DNA of 63,965 nucleotides, filler included, from Reticulomyxa filosa (lineage: Eukaryota; Protista; Foraminifera), in the NCBI GenBank assembly GCA_000512085.1. It is 16 parts of 16 records of this genome, joined end to end, with 100 filler letters (N's around TTAATTAATTAA, not from the genome) between each part and the next. Parts side by side here need not be neighbours in the genome. Positions count along the whole stretch, not along the records: positions 49,575 to 57,269 come from ASPP01017689.1; 15 more parts are not named here. One strand, 5' to 3'. The notes beneath the pieces are model-generated. The model did not search any database, had not been told where the DNA came from, and was given only the letters and a program-made list of their open reading frames with translations. The position numbers and the translations under genes are program-made. Below, piece by piece: positions 49,475 to 57,389 of this stretch; the first letter of the stretch is position 1; each line of letters starts with the position of its first letter.

Positions 49475-49631
49475 NNNNNNNNNNNNNNNNNNNNNNNNNN
49501 NNNNNNNNNNNNNNNNNNTTAATTAATTAANNNNNNNNNNNNNNNNNNNNNNNNNNNNNNNNNNNNNNNNNNNNCTCCTTAACTTGACGCGTATGGTTCT
49601 TTAAACGCTCCCGAAAATCTTAAATATCGAT

Positions 49632-50150
49632 TCAAAATTTAACTTGATTATAATCAACCACAAACCGCCAAAGTTTTTCCTTTCCTTTTGAAATGCCTAT
49701 TCTAGGGGTGGTTAAAACACTAAAATTCAAATCTATATCGGCAATATAAATCTCATTATCTCCAATGATATCTATATTATTATGCGATCTATCTATATTA
49801 AGTAGTTTGCACAATTTTCCCGGGCCATTTATAATTGTTTTCCTTTCATAATGCATACCCCCACGTATTAGGACTGCAGATCCTATTCCTTCTCTTTCAG
49901 TGACAATATTTAAGCAATTATAAATTCCATAAATAAGATATACATATAATTTACCAGCATCTCCAAACATTGGGGCTGTTCTTTTAGTTAAACCTTTAGC
50001 TGAATGAGATGCTGGATCATCTATTCCAACGTACGCCTCTGTTTCAGTTATAATAATCTTTTGATCTTTCCATACTAATTTCTTACCTATAAGGCTCTTG
50101 GCAACTTCAAGTGTAGGGTTTAAGAAAAATCCTCGATCTAATTTAATCAT
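49632..50150 (-). CDS. mpg: DNA-3-methyladenine glycosylase (MPG/AAG family)
   Basis: ITETEAY.G.DDPASH, YVYLIYG, AVLIRG, NGPGKLC, PRIGI, WRF. Confidence 0.95.
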   Translation of the reverse strand: MIKLDRGFFLNPTLEVAKSLIGKKLVWKDQKIIITETEAYVGIDDPASHSAKGLTKRTAPMFGDAGKLYVYLIYGIYNCLNIVTEREGIGSAVLIRGGMHYERKTIINGPGKLCKLLNIDRSHNNIDIIGDNEIYIADIDLNFSVLTTPRIGISKGKEKLWRFVVDYNQVKF

Positions 50151-50155
50151 GCTAA

Positions 50156-50488
50156 TTAATTGGTGGTTTCTTCTTTTAAATCTCTAAATTGATTTAAAGT
50201 TGATAGTAAGCAATTATGAAAATTGTTACTAATGTAAAATCTTAATTCATCGATAGTCATATTGCTTATTGAAGGTATTTTGCGTACTTCTTTGATAAAT
50301 TGTACTAAATTTTGAATTAAATAAGTAGAAAAATATATTAAAGAAGTATTAATTACTTGATAATTCTCTAACGTCAGGCCCGATTCTTGAAGCAGAACCT
50401 TTACTTTTTCATTTTCATGAGTACATAAAAATCTTAAAGATTCTAATCCATAATAAAATTTAGTATCTTTAAATTCAGGATCTACCAC
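50156..50488 (-). CDS. Hypothetical protein (bacterial)
   Basis: 110-aa ORF ending 5 nt before the mpg start on the same strand. Start uncertain. Confidence 0.6.
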   Translation of the reverse strand: MVDPEFKDTKFYYGLESLRFLCTHENEKVKVLLQESGLTLENYQVINTSLIYFSTYLIQNLVQFIKEVRKIPSISNMTIDELRFYISNNFHNCLLSTLNQFRDLKEETTN

Positions 50489-50512
50489 CTGACCTAGAAC
50501 ATTTAATATTGT

Positions 50513-50734
50513 TTAAAATTCCTTAGTTTCATAATCCGATGTAACACATCTTAGAAATAATTCTGATTTTTCTAAAAATTCTACGCTACTGAAACCAGCC
50601 TTTTTAATTTCATCAAAAATTACTTCCATGAAATTTTGAATTGTAAGCGCTATGATTGCCATACTTTCAGGAGAAAGGTTATTCAACTCTTCCTGTGAAA
50701 ATTCTTCAAACTCCCCTTTTACTACAAATCCCAT
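50513..50734 (-). CDS. Hypothetical small acidic protein (bacterial)
   Basis: 73-aa ORF co-oriented with the mpg cluster. Confidence 0.55.
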   Translation of the reverse strand: MGFVVKGEFEEFSQEELNNLSPESMAIIALTIQNFMEVIFDEIKKAGFSSVEFLEKSELFLRCVTSDYETKEF

Positions 50735-50799
50735 ATCAAGGCATAATTGTTTATACCTTGTATGCTAGCAATTAAATATTAACGATTTATTAACAAAAA

Positions 50800-51001
50800 T
50801 TATATTTTTTGGTAGGGAATAGGTTTACCTGATGAATCCAAGGCTAATTCACCATTTTCAAAAACTGCTGCGATATAATTGCCATGCCCAACTGTTTTAC
50901 CCATATACATAACAGGTTTAACTTGTTTTCCATTCAGCTTTTTCAATTTTGCAGATGAACCACGGTTTTCAATGTTGTTTTTCGAGCCTTTTTTTTGCCA
51001 T
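50800..51001 (-). CDS. Small basic hypothetical protein missed by the ORF track (+1 frameshift in an A8 run)
   Basis: Removing one A gives MAKKGSKNNIENRGSSAKLKKLNGKQVKPVMYMGKTVGHGNYIAAVFENGELALDSSGKPIPYQKI*. It is preceded by an AAGGT RBS-like site and a promoter. Confidence 0.7.
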
Positions 51002-51028
51002 TTTTAGTACCTTTATATTATTTTACAA

Positions 51029-51057
51029 TATATATGATTTTTAATGAGAAATGTCAA
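51029..51057 (-). promoter_or_regulatory. Sigma70-like promoter
   Basis: TTGACA-17 nt-TATATA on the minus strand, about 28 nt upstream of the ATG at 51001. Confidence 0.6.
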
Positions 51058-51083
51058 GAAGTGAGAAGATGTAAAATAATGCT

Positions 51084-52406
51084 TTAAATCACCTTAAAAT
51101 TAACTGAGATTTTAGGGCAAAAAAGCAATTGTAATCCATTAGCATTATTACGTATTTGGAACTTTAATGATTGCCATGGTCGCTTGCGTAAATCATCTTC
51201 CTTTACTGCAAATTGATACCATTCATATGATAATGCCCCTAACTCTGAATGTATTTGAGGAGTTTTATAATCGAACTCATAGCCTATTCCCTCTATCATA
51301 GCCTATTCCCTCTAATTCAAAATTTAATTCATTCAGTTTAGAATCTACATCGCTATGATATTGTTTCATTGCTCTTAAACATACCAACCTTTGACGCTCA
51401 ACAAATGGTTGATTAGATACAATTAACACATTAACTTTATCAACTTTGCTTTCTTGACTTGATAATACATCAAAAAGTAATTTACTTGAAAATATGCTGT
51501 ATCATAAGTTTCAGCTCTGTAGCCAGTTTTAACTACAGGAGGGAGCACTTCAATAGGCCTTTCACCGAAAACTACCTTTTTAATATCTTCAGACATAATA
51601 GCTTCGTCTAAAACTCTAGTTTCTCCATCAGCATAATTTATATAAGTTCTATTCTTAACCCTACCTAAAGGTAAATTCTCTTCTTTTTCATATTTAACAA
51701 ATGGTTGGTTATCATTGATTTTAAAGCCATTTTTAATAGCTAAATCCAGCATATATATTTTACCTAATTCAATATCGATATTCGGGCCATTATTAACTCC
51801 TTCGATTTCTGCCCATAACTCTCTATCCCCATTAAGAATACGTATAGTTTCAAATTGAATACCTGCATCTTCATATTTTTTAATGTACTCAAGTCGATCA
51901 AGAAGAGCTTGTCTGGAAGCACCTTGCACCCATACCTCATCATAATATCTATATTTAGGCTCTATTTTTGAAACCAAACCAAGAACTTGTGCACTTTTCA
52001 AATATTCTTCAGCGAAAACTATCAGCCAATCTTTTTCAAATATCTCATTACGCTCCTGTTTAATTTTTCTATCAAATGCAGTTTGTCCCCAATACGTGAT
52101 AAAATCTTGTATATCTTGCTTATCAAATAGTTCATTATTGAAAAGATTTTTTATAACATAAGTGCTGTTAAATGCCATAGGATCTATAGGATATGCCTTA
52201 GCATCATTCATAACGTTTAAAATATGTTCATAAATTAATAACGGATCTTGAAATCCACCCATTGAATTTACATCTTGCCATACTCTTTCTGGTAAAAAGT
52301 ACCCAGGAATATATAACATTGTAATAAAAGCTTTTTGCTGAGGTAGATTTTGCAAATACCCATCAACTCCGAATTCAGCTAGTACTTCCTCAAAACTATA
52401 TGACAT
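51084..52406 (-). pseudogene. Hypothetical protein (YdcF/DUF218-like fold suspected), split by two frameshifts
   Basis: The 327-aa ORF continues in another frame after a T-run at about 51471-51476 (DVLSSQ..VLIVSNQPFVERQ..ELEGIGY), then a 19-bp tandem duplication leads to EFDYKTPQIHSELG.. Confidence 0.7.
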
Positions 52407-52409
52407 AAA

Positions 52410-53045
52410 TTAAAGACTTTTTATCAGTTTTATTAATTCATTATGATCCAAGATATTAACAATATCTTTTTCAGGCATTTTACCATAAAAGATAGGAATA
52501 CATCCAGCTTTTTTCGCGCATTCAACATCTACTGGTGTATCTCCTACTAACCAAACTTGGCTATAGTCTTCTATTTCCAACTCTTTTAATATTTCAAAAA
52601 TGGGAACCGGGGATGGCTTATCTTCTGAAACATCCATGGAACCTATCATCTGATAAAAATATTTATTCCAACCAAAATGGTTAGCTTCTTTACGTAAAAT
52701 TGTTCCTAGTTTATTGCTAACAACTCCTAGATGAAATTTCTCTCGATGTAAATGTATCAACAATTCTTCTGCATATGGTAAAGGTTTTAAGTGTTCAAGG
52801 TGCATTTCATAATAATGCTTGTAAAATGTCTCTCTAGCTTTTTCATAATCACTACCAAAAATAGCTGGAAAACTGTCTTTAAGAGATTTATGGGCTTGTT
52901 CCATAGTTTCTTGTAAGGTAAGAACAGGTTTATTAAATTCTACAAAAGTCTTATTCAGAGTTTGATGAATTAATTTCCAAGTACCAACTAAGGTATTATC
53001 CCAATCAAAAATTATAGCCTTTGGTTTTTTTAAATTTTTAATCAT
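52410..53045 (-). CDS. gph: HAD-family hydrolase (phosphoglycolate phosphatase-like)
   Basis: IIFDWDNTL, VVSNK, KPSP, VGDTPVDVECA. Confidence 0.88.
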   Translation of the reverse strand: MIKNLKKPKAIIFDWDNTLVGTWKLIHQTLNKTFVEFNKPVLTLQETMEQAHKSLKDSFPAIFGSDYEKARETFYKHYYEMHLEHLKPLPYAEELLIHLHREKFHLGVVSNKLGTILRKEANHFGWNKYFYQMIGSMDVSEDKPSPVPIFEILKELEIEDYSQVWLVGDTPVDVECAKKAGCIPIFYGKMPEKDIVNILDHNELIKLIKSL

Positions 53046-53046
53046 G

Positions 53047-55367
53047 TTATTTTCTATTTAATCTTAATGAATTTATTATGACGCACAAAGAAGATAAAGA
53101 CATAGCTATTGCAGCAAACATAGGGTTAATATATCCCAAAATTGCAATCGGTATTGTTATAATATTATATAAAATAGCCATCGATAAATTCTGTTTCACT
53201 AATTGGTCTGCTTTAAACGCTACTTCAATTGTTTCTAAAATTCCAAATAAATCCTTTTGATAAATAATATCAGCATTATTTTGTGCAATATCTATCGCAG
53301 AAGAAGGAGACATAGATACATACGCTTTTTTTAAGGCAGCGGAATCATTCAATCCATCGCCAACCATCATACAATACTCCAGATTGGAAACAAAATCATA
53401 TTTTTCCTGTGGCTTTATTTCAGCAGTGTAGTTTTCAATACCTAAACCATTAGCAACTCTGGTTACAACAGATCTTTTATCTCCTGACAAAATCCAAATA
53501 TTATATTTACTCTTAAGCTTATCAATCACTAATTTAGCTTCATTTCTAATTTCATCACTAAACAATAATCTAATTGGATTTTTTTCCCCTTGCTTAAACC
53601 ATATCTCTGTAACCCCGTCTTCGATAATTAATTTTTTATCAATGTTGCATAAGTCCTTACTACCTAATAATAACTTTTCATCTTTATACTTAGCACTCAA
53701 TCCCATCCCTTTGATTTCATCAACTTGTAAATCAATGATATCACCATCGTATTCAGCTCTTAACGCTATAGATATGGGATGTTTACTCTTAGCAGCAAGT
53801 GAGGCTATCAACTGCATGGTAGGATCTGCTATCTGCTGTGAATTAATCAGTTTAAGTTTACCATATGTTAGCGTACCTGTTTTATCAAAAACTATTGTCT
53901 TAATATTAGCAATTTTTTCCAGAGCATCTTGAGATTTTAATAATATTCCTCTTTCCATCAATCTACTACTAGCAATGATCTGAACAATTGGAACAGCTAA
54001 ACCCAATGCGCAAGGACAAGTTATAATTAAAACAGCAACTGCATTAAGAAGGGCATTAATTGCGTCATAGTTATAAATTAACCAACCTATAAATGTTAAT
54101 GCTGATAATAATAGAACAACTGGAGTATAATACCCTGCAATTCTATCCGCTAACATAACGTATTTTGCTCTACCTTGCTCTGCGATTTCAATCAACTTAA
54201 TTATTTCACCTAAAACTGTAGAATCACCAAATTTTGTTATTCGTATTTTAATTGGTACTAATAAATTAACTGTGCCTGCATATACATAATCGCCTTCAGC
54301 TACATTAATTGGCGTCGTCTCTCCAGTTATTAAACTATTATCAACTTCGCTTTTTCCTTCTAGAATTACGCCATCTACAGGAATTTTTTCACCAACACTT
54401 ACAAAAGCAATAGCTCCTAATTCTACTTTGCTAATATGGATTAATTTTAACTTCCATCCTCAAAAATAGTGACTGTATTAGATTGTTGTAATATTAATTG
54501 TCGAGCTTTTTCTCTTGCTTTATGGCGAGAATGAATATCCAAAGATCTGCCTATTAAAAGAGCTAAGATCAGCATAGTAGCAGAATCAAAGTAAGTGTAA
54601 TCACCTCCTCTTATGAACTCCTCAATACTAATTAATGTTGTAGCAATAATTCCAATAGAAATAGGAACATCCATGTTATTGCGTCCTGCTTTTAATGTAC
54701 TGAACGCATTTTTAAAAAATAGCGAACCTGAATAAATGATGCATGGAATCGCAATTATCATACTAAATAAATGTAATATTTTACGAGTATATTCACCCAT
54801 TGAACCAAAATTATCTGCAAACCAAATTCCCATAACGATCATCATTAGCTGTACAGTTGCAAACCCTGAGACAGCTATCCCTCTTAAAATACTTTTTTCT
54901 TTTATATCATCTTTATCTTCTGTGATATCATGATCTACGGGCAGCAATTTATATCCGAGCTTTTGAATAATCTCTATAAATTTCAAATAATCATTTTTTT
55001 CACCATTCCAAGCAATATGCAATCTATTAGTTGAAAGATTTACTCTTGCATGAGTGACTAGAGGATCGGTTTTCAATGTTTTCTCTATTAACCAAATACA
55101 GGATCCACATTGGATGCCTTCTACCAATAAATTAATTTCAAACTGTTTTTCAAAAATGTGCTTAATTGAATTTTGGTAATTTAATTCGTTTTTAAATTCC
55201 TGAACTTTCATAGGGGTAGTGTTATAAAGGGTTTTACAATAACTATAATAATCATTTAAATTTAAAGCATTTATTATTTTAAATGCTGATTCACAACCAA
55301 AACAGCAAAATTTTATATTTTCTTTAGATATTTTTGAATTACAATGCAAACATTTATCATTTTTCAT
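53047..55367 (-). CDS. ccoI: Heavy-metal (Cu) P1B-type ATPase CcoI/FixI; single-base frameshift at about 54450
   Basis: N-terminal CxHC..FCCxGC, GIQCGSC, then after a one-base shift GEKIPVDG/TGE, CPCALG, DKTGT, HP, GDGLND and YN..AMSLSS. Confidence 0.9.
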
Positions 55368-55504
55368 TTAGTTTACCTAGAAAATACAGGCCCTGCCTAT
55401 CTAAATAGGTGTTTACAATCTTATAAAAACAACTATTTTAAATATAAGAAAATATAGTATCATTCTCTCGATTTGTTTAACATATAAATTAGTGGTAACT
55501 AATA

Positions 55505-56792
55505 ATGAAAGTAGAAATTCTCGAAAAAAGCGAACTTAAAAGAAAATTCAAATTTTCAATACCAGCAAAGCCTTTGCTCGAAAAAATAGACAACAAAATT
55601 GAAGAAGAAGCAAAAACTTTTAAGATGGCTGGGTTTAGAGAAGGAAAAGTTCCTGTTAATATTGTGAGAAAGCGTATCGGCGCGAATGTTTTATCAAGTG
55701 TTATTGAAACCTCTGTAGATGAAACTCTAAAAAGCTATTTTGAAACTAATAGTATCAGACCAGCTTTGCAGCCATTTGTTGAGATAGTATCTTTTGATGA
55801 TAAATCTGATTTAGTTTTTGATGCCACTATCGAGGTCTTTCCTGATTTACCTAAAGTTACATGGGATACCTTAGAAATTGAAATGTTTGATGTAGATATT
55901 ACCGATGAAGATTTAAAAAAGGCGCATGAAGACATATTAAAGAATTTCAAAAACTTTAATAAAGCTGACGATGCATATAAAGCGCAAAAGGTGATGCAGT
56001 CATTATTGATTTTGTTGGTAAAGTCGATAATAACGAATTCGAGGGTGGAAAAGGAGAAGGTATCAGACTTGAGCTAGGTTCCAACCAATTTATTCCTAGT
56101 CTTGAAGAGCAATTAATCGACGCTAAAGCTAGTGATAATATAAACGTTAATGTAACTTTTCCTGCTGATTATGCAAATAAGCAATTAGCTAGTAAACCTG
56201 CTGTATTTGAAGTTAAGGTACATGAAGTTTTAAAACCTGAATCTGTAAGTGATATAGATGATGACTTTGCCAAAAAATTAGGTTTAGAAAATTTAGATAA
56301 ACTAAATGAGATGATTAAACAAAAGATAAAAGCTGATTTTGAAGGCTTAGCAAGGCTTAGAACTAAAAAATTACTGTTTGATCTCATTGATGAAAAGTAT
56401 CAATTTTCAGTTCCTGAAGGCATGTTCAAGTTAGATTTTGATATGATGTGGAGCGAAGTTAAGAAACAACATGAAAAAAACCCTTCAAATTTTAACAAAC
56501 CTTTAAATGAACTTGAAGAGGATTACAAAAAAATTGCTGCTAGAAGAGTAAGACTTGGAATATTACTAGCTGAAACTGCTACAGAAAATAACATAAATGT
56601 AGATGATAAAGATCTTCAGCAAGCAGTATATGCAGAAGCCATGCAAAGGCCTGGCCAAGAGAAACTAGTTATAGATTTCTACTCTAATAAAGACAACTTA
56701 GAAAGATTAAAAAGACTTATCCTTGAAGAAAAAGCTGTTGATTTTATTTTAACTAAGGTCAAGACTAATAAAAAGAAGATAACTTTAAAAGA
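55505..56792 (+). pseudogene. tig: Trigger factor, frameshifted at about 55990, with degraded conserved residues and its C-terminus fused to clpX
   Basis: GFREGKVP, IIDFVGKVDNNEFEGG, VTFPADY, RRVRLGILL, EEKAVDFIL. Confidence 0.92.
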
Positions 56793-57004
56793 GCTATTAT
56801 GGAAGAAGCTTTATTAGATCTGATGTATGATGTCCAGGTACTAAAGGAATTAAAGAAGTTGTCATTACCCCTGAAGTAATTAAATCAAGTTCAAAACCAA
56901 TATTTATTCATGAAAGTAAAGAATCAAACCCTAATGACCCTAAAGGTTCTAATCATGAAGGCCATTCATCGGAAAAACCTTCTCAAAGTAAGAAAGTGAG
57001 CTAG
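56790..57004 (+). pseudogene. clpX: C-terminal remnant of ClpX ATPase
   Basis: RAIMEEALLDLMYDV / PGTKGIKEVVITPEVIKSSSKPIFI matches the ClpX tail (GLRSI.E..LLD.MY..P....EVVI...V....P). One-base frameshift at about 56833; stop at 57002-57004. Confidence 0.85.
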
Positions 57005-57389
57005 TTTTAATTACAATGTTTAATATAATTTTATAAATTAAACTATACCGTAATATCTTTTTAATATATAAAAGTTATTGTTCTAACCAATAATTGATTT
57101 GTATGCTTGAAGAATTGCTTGCTCCCTCAACACCTAGGGTATTTGACACTACCAAACCAGTTGAAAAATTACAAACTAGAAACCCTTCTCATCCTACATC
57201 ACTTGGAGTTTATCCACTTGAGAGCCTTTACCAATAGGTAGTTATACCATTTCCTGAAGTTAAATTAGTNNNNNNNNNNNNNNNNNNNNNNNNNNNNNNN
57301 NNNNNNNNNNNNNTTAATTAATTAANNNNNNNNNNNNNNNNNNNNNNNNNNNNNNNNNNNNNNNNNNNNAAAAAAAAAAAAAAGGGGAA

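Follow-up and report, generated by a model that had tools for sequence, protein, structure and literature searches.

The window analysed here is a stretch of 63,965 nucleotides from the assembly of the foraminiferan Reticulomyxa filosa (GCA_000512085.1), and one of its parts is the whole of contig ASPP01017689.1 (7695 bp, positions 49,575 to 57,269). On the minus strand, the contig carries genes for a methylpurine-DNA glycosylase (49632..50150), two conserved proteins of 191 codons (50156..50734) and 67 codons (50800..51001), a protein of about 440 codons (51084..52406), a HAD hydrolase (52410..53045) and a heavy-metal P1B ATPase of CcoI/FixI-like architecture (53047..55367). On the plus strand lie tig, encoding trigger factor (55505..56793; Pfam Trigger_N, FKBP_C and Trigger_C, and TIGR00115), and a C-terminal remnant of clpX (56790..57004). 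Only the glycosylase and hydrolase genes are intact; of the nine genes, the other seven are either damaged or missing. Where a frameshift splits a protein, its pieces were joined solely by an X or N at that point.

Bacterial origin and donor clade

The contig is DNA of bacterial origin and belongs to the Midichloriaceae, in the Jidaibacter/UWC8 clade. Its Tig is 76-80% identical to the homologues of 'Namur', UWC8 and Ca. Jidaibacter, and the Tig tree groups it with Jidaibacter, UWC8 and 'Namur' (support 98/97). Its end branch is 0.17 long, and the relatives' branches are no shorter. Gene order is shared as well: as in other Midichloriaceae (e.g. UWC8 CP004403, 'Namur' and Ca. Jidaibacter), the HAD gene, the P1B ATPase gene, tig and the end of clpX follow one another. 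A scan of metagenomes gave no closer tig locus. An Rfam search of the sequence returned no match, and a scan for promoters and terminators returned nothing exceeding chance. Nothing resembling a toxin, an effector or a human sequence was encountered.

This placement of tig matches a known symbiont of the host. A Midichloriaceae symbiont of R. filosa, from the same sequencing project and the same clade as the contig, has been reassembled from the project's Illumina reads, and its 16S is 93.6% identical to that of UWC8 (Castelli et al. 2024, PMC10847448; deposit Zenodo 10.5281/zenodo.10324454). The reassembly spans 1.306 Mb in 242 contigs (N50 7721 bp), is the best of nine new genomes with 85.4% complete and 1.8% fragmented BUSCOs, and has an incomplete type IV secretion set (PMC10847448). 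It is mostly intact with a listed GC of 37.5%, whereas the contig is damaged and has a GC of 30.8%. This gap in GC would point to a different donor. We give it little weight and reject it as proof of a second organism, since the GC values in one sheet of the supplement look inconsistent. In the Reticulomyxa sheet of Supplementary Data 5 (PMC10847448), GC seems too low for contigs that are mostly rRNA, and unrelated organisms all stand at 73-133x depth. Because these values look implausible, the GC and depth columns were left unused.

In the host annotation, the gene caller modelled three genes on the contig. One of them, RFI_20447, is 100% identical to the contig's Tig in the Tig protein search and skips the frameshift by means of a predicted intron. 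The eukaryotic gene models on the contig (1849-7243) bridge frameshifts by predicted introns in this way, and the HAD gene is fused to a neighbouring gene in one of them, which is why an exact look-up of the HAD protein gave no match. Both UniRef and EukProt list RFI_20447 as a protein of a foraminiferan.

The junction between tig and clpX

The operon tig-clpP-clpX is whole in all eight relatives that have it in view. The contig, in contrast, has lost 1.84 kb of it and carries frameshifts in both tig and the clpX tail; with no intact tig, clpP or clpX in the contig, there is no functional operon. At the junction the tig frame reads ..KVKTNKKKITLKE (..KKITLKE), followed by LLWKKLY and a stop at 56815-56817. 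A second frame runs from 56790 (RAIMEEALLDLMYDV); the loss of one base at 56832-56835 then shifts the reading into a third, PGTKGIKEVVITPEV..SKKVS*, which ends in a stop at 57002-57004. An earlier note on this DNA had described tig joined to the ClpX C-terminus in another frame. That description holds, including the different frame of the clpX tail, while the frameshifts within tig and within the tail itself had been missed.

The last ~70 codons of clpX are therefore present after tig, from residue 364 onwards, and out of frame. A tblastn search with the relatives' ClpX places 56790-57004, the stretch previously assigned to ClpX, against residues 364-407 of the closest relatives (62-73% identity, E 2e-9, for a search within the 7.7 kb piece), and at this E value a chance resemblance to ClpX was rejected. 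Since the join is out of frame, it is the DNA that is fused and not the proteins. A Tig-ClpX fusion protein was rejected on these grounds, as the tig frame stops shortly after the junction and clpX lies in another frame.

Neither clpP nor the remainder of clpX has a match anywhere in the 7.7 kb piece, which fits the earlier note's claim that both had gone from this copy. With both sides aligned, the missing stretch measures 1826-1883 bp across the eight relatives (1841 in both 'Namur' and UWC8) and takes in the final 13 codons of tig, the spacer, the entire clpP gene and codons 1-363 of clpX. The flanks are collinear and in the same orientation, with tig and clpX both on the plus strand. In 'Namur' and UWC8, each of the two aligned breakpoints carries the pentamer AAGAG, of which the contig retains one copy (56789..56793, plus strand); its presence at the parental breakpoints is thus read from relatives rather than from the parent allele. 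Homology stops at AAGAG: on either side of it, the conserved codons no longer agree. Under a null for microhomology length, random breakpoints in these genes have at least five bases in common in about 1% of cases. The idea that the junction holds a long repeat was considered and rejected.

A microhomology deletion of 1.84 kb fits the contig sequence, much as the earlier note had proposed with a loss of roughly 2 kb through shared TTAA/AGAG. The shared sequence shown by the alignments is AAGAG. TTAA could add no more than an imperfect extension to it; in the contig the residue is Leu, and in 56 of 57 relatives it is Ser.

The join may instead be an artefact. Here the contig would be a thinly covered, error-rich piece of the normal symbiont chromosome, its 1-bp indels would be homopolymer miscalls, the tig-clpX join and a 19-nt duplication (described below) would stem from false joins or a chimeric molecule, and the operon would be intact in the bacterium; we regard this as a serious possibility, with somewhat less than an even chance of being right. 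In its favour, the junction sequence resembles a blend of both ends, with a T run from clpX and an A run from tig. On the other hand, an assembler needs an overlap of more than five bases to make a join, and mate-pair junction reads yield duplication-type rather than deletion-type joins.

Lesions along the rest of the contig

Five 1-bp indels are found on the contig, all in or at homopolymer runs and all changing homopolymer length. In tig, one base is lost from the A run at 55986-55989. The 67-codon gene has one extra base in an 8-base run (50989-50996), the ~440-codon gene has lost one base near 51489-51492, and the frame of the ATPase gene shifts near 54452. Such changes are also the error signature of pyrosequencing, and the R. 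filosa assembly is said to rest partly on 454 reads; both points count for an artefact and the first counts against genuine decay. Part of the 1-bp indels may be sequencing errors.

Three lesions are of other kinds than homopolymer miscalls. Besides the deletion, these are an in-frame TAA in the 191-codon gene (50513-50515, where relatives have E or D) and a perfect 19-nt tandem duplication (51277..51314, no strand assigned) that shifts the frame of the ~440-codon gene and has no flanking microhomology. Tandem duplications without microhomology are usually put down to end-joining repair, and they can also come from uncollapsed assembly overlaps. One stop in 6.3 kb corresponds to only about 0.3-0.5% substitution, which is little for so many indels.

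The substitutions in tig bear on the question from both sides. Where columns are conserved to 95% or more, the gene shows five radical changes (G to S, F to L, G to D, G to R and P to L), and a single transition accounts for each. This is the top count among 58 Tig sequences, the mean being 1.16 in comparably distant ones. Transitions at invariant codons are atypical of 454 errors and speak against an artefact. The changes are clustered rather than even, which speaks for one: the excess is local to two tig clusters, and the ATPase shows none. Non-conservative changes fall at 56098-56119 and 56713-56717, and the first 161 tig codons, with just 14 conserved columns among them, have none. Synonymous sites are saturated in a branch dN/dS model.

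The ~440-codon gene (Atlas lead Rv3785_N) has homologues of 430-550 aa that cover all three of its frames. They form a family of about 200 clusters without a confident Pfam match or any NCBIfam match. The gene is absent from the same position in UWC8 and 'Namur'. A homologue follows the HAD gene on a soil contig (L046), which at 75% DNA identity is the closest relative seen.

Possible origins of the damaged contig

With seven of nine genes damaged or missing and a published reassembly that is largely intact, it is unlikely that we see in the contig the ordinary chromosome of the live symbiont. The proportion of broken genes, set against the 14.6% of BUSCOs that are fragmented or missing, gives a binomial probability of 4e-5, a rough figure given that the two gene sets are unlike. 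This leaves either a separate, dead copy or a faulty assembly. The intactness of the same-project Illumina reassembly (PMC10847448) is also what an artefact would lead one to expect.

The reading that we favour, at about an even chance of being correct, is that a copy of symbiont DNA, dead and recently decaying and probably a nuclear insert, underwent a genuine deletion at a microhomology. The contig would be a copy of Midichloriaceae DNA sitting in the nuclear genome of R. filosa, released from selection, decaying and yielding nothing useful. A break would have been rejoined, or a replication fork would have slipped, between the AAGAG near the end of tig and the AAGAG in clpX. One AAGAG would have been kept, and clpP and most of clpX lost with the 1.84 kb. 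We infer that the junction belongs to a real molecule; the repair route is a candidate one, and the host nucleus is the likely setting in our analysis.

Several observations argue for such a dead copy. A bacterial contig of 7695 bp was retained in the assembly of a eukaryote, the lesions are of mixed types (three go beyond simple homopolymer miscalls), tig has radical changes at near-invariant columns, and the 5-bp microhomology is non-random and yet below the length at which an assembler would make a join. Moreover, no intact R. filosa-named Tig of the clade appears among the matches listed, and no R. filosa-named ClpP or ClpX of the clade appears in the best 120 matches to 'Namur' queries, a search with a length filter in which many entries are unnamed and the proteins come from a eukaryotic gene caller. 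That no ClpP or ClpX of the clade was seen there, though three genes of this contig were modelled, also speaks weakly against an artefact.

Other observations argue against a dead copy. Host DNA is recognisable at neither end of the contig, the 1-bp indels and the localised substitution excess have the properties described above, the substitution level is low for the number of indels and the end branch of tig is ordinary. The final 265 bp (57005-57269) have no match among the loci compared and may stem from a bacterial spacer or from the host. They include a 47-codon ORF (57094-57237) with no Pfam match.

Loss of the protease in a living bacterium is a further alternative. ClpXP would be gone from the living symbiont, or from one of its lineages in the host, and the bacterium would be shedding tig and its neighbours, with Lon/FtsH or a sister lineage to fall back on; we consider this improbable. 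We think it very improbable that ClpXP and trigger factor have both been lost, with most other core genes kept, from the living symbiont or from one among several degenerate lineages residing together. The lack of an intact copy among the R. filosa proteins in the best 120 matches listed would agree with a living loss, as would the fragmented symbiont assembly (N50 7.7 kb) with its incomplete type IV secretion set (PMC10847448). The BUSCO scores of the symbiont (PMC10847448) go against it, as does the whole operon in eight of eight relatives, and the clpX remnant and tig bear further lesions, as in dead DNA.

A Rickettsiales cell without ClpXP, as implied by the earlier note, finds no support in a contig where most genes, tig included, are damaged and whose published counterpart is mostly intact. 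The accompanying premise, that ClpXP is essential in studied alphaproteobacteria, is only partly true. ClpXP is essential in Caulobacter (PMC5324124), whereas a clpP deletion in Brucella abortus is viable (PMC10464072), which makes the premise too strong and leaves somewhat more room for a living loss.

The contig is a fresh case of a known phenomenon, or an artefact, and is not evidence for Rickettsiales living without ClpXP. Nuclear Wolbachia transfers occur in nematodes and insects. The contig resembles them as Rickettsiales DNA that turns up in the assembly of a host and shows numerous small indels and non-functional genes, and no constraint on indels acts on inserts of this kind as they evolve (PMC12693587). 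It differs in that the donor belongs to the Midichloriaceae and the host is a foraminiferan. Symbiont contigs also remain in other eukaryote assemblies, an example being the rickettsial DNA in the Trichoplax project (PMC3641634), and there too bacterial DNA is annotated as host genes; the R. filosa contig differs in that it is not intact but heavily damaged.

If the contig is a dead nuclear copy, R. filosa nuclei would hold Midichloriaceae DNA in blocks of several genes, the protist equivalent of the nuclear transfers known for Wolbachia. Such blocks could help to explain why the symbiont assembly is fragmented, and would advise caution in inferring gene loss from it. If the contig is an artefact, models of the RFI_20445-20447 type are mis-annotated bacterial sequence. 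Only the unlikely living loss would surprise specialists, as a case of Rickettsiales lacking a protease that, in Caulobacter, drives the cell cycle.

Two loci in other bacteria show how this neighbourhood can vary. In a distant Rickettsiales MAG (L002, 3403-6526), tig is followed by peroxiredoxin-like and thioredoxin reductase-like genes and by no clpP, so the tig-clpP-clpX operon can be split. In a relative (L043, 3657-5890), the P1B ATPase gene beside tig is in pieces while tig-clpP-clpX is intact, which shows that the ATPase can decay in this family.
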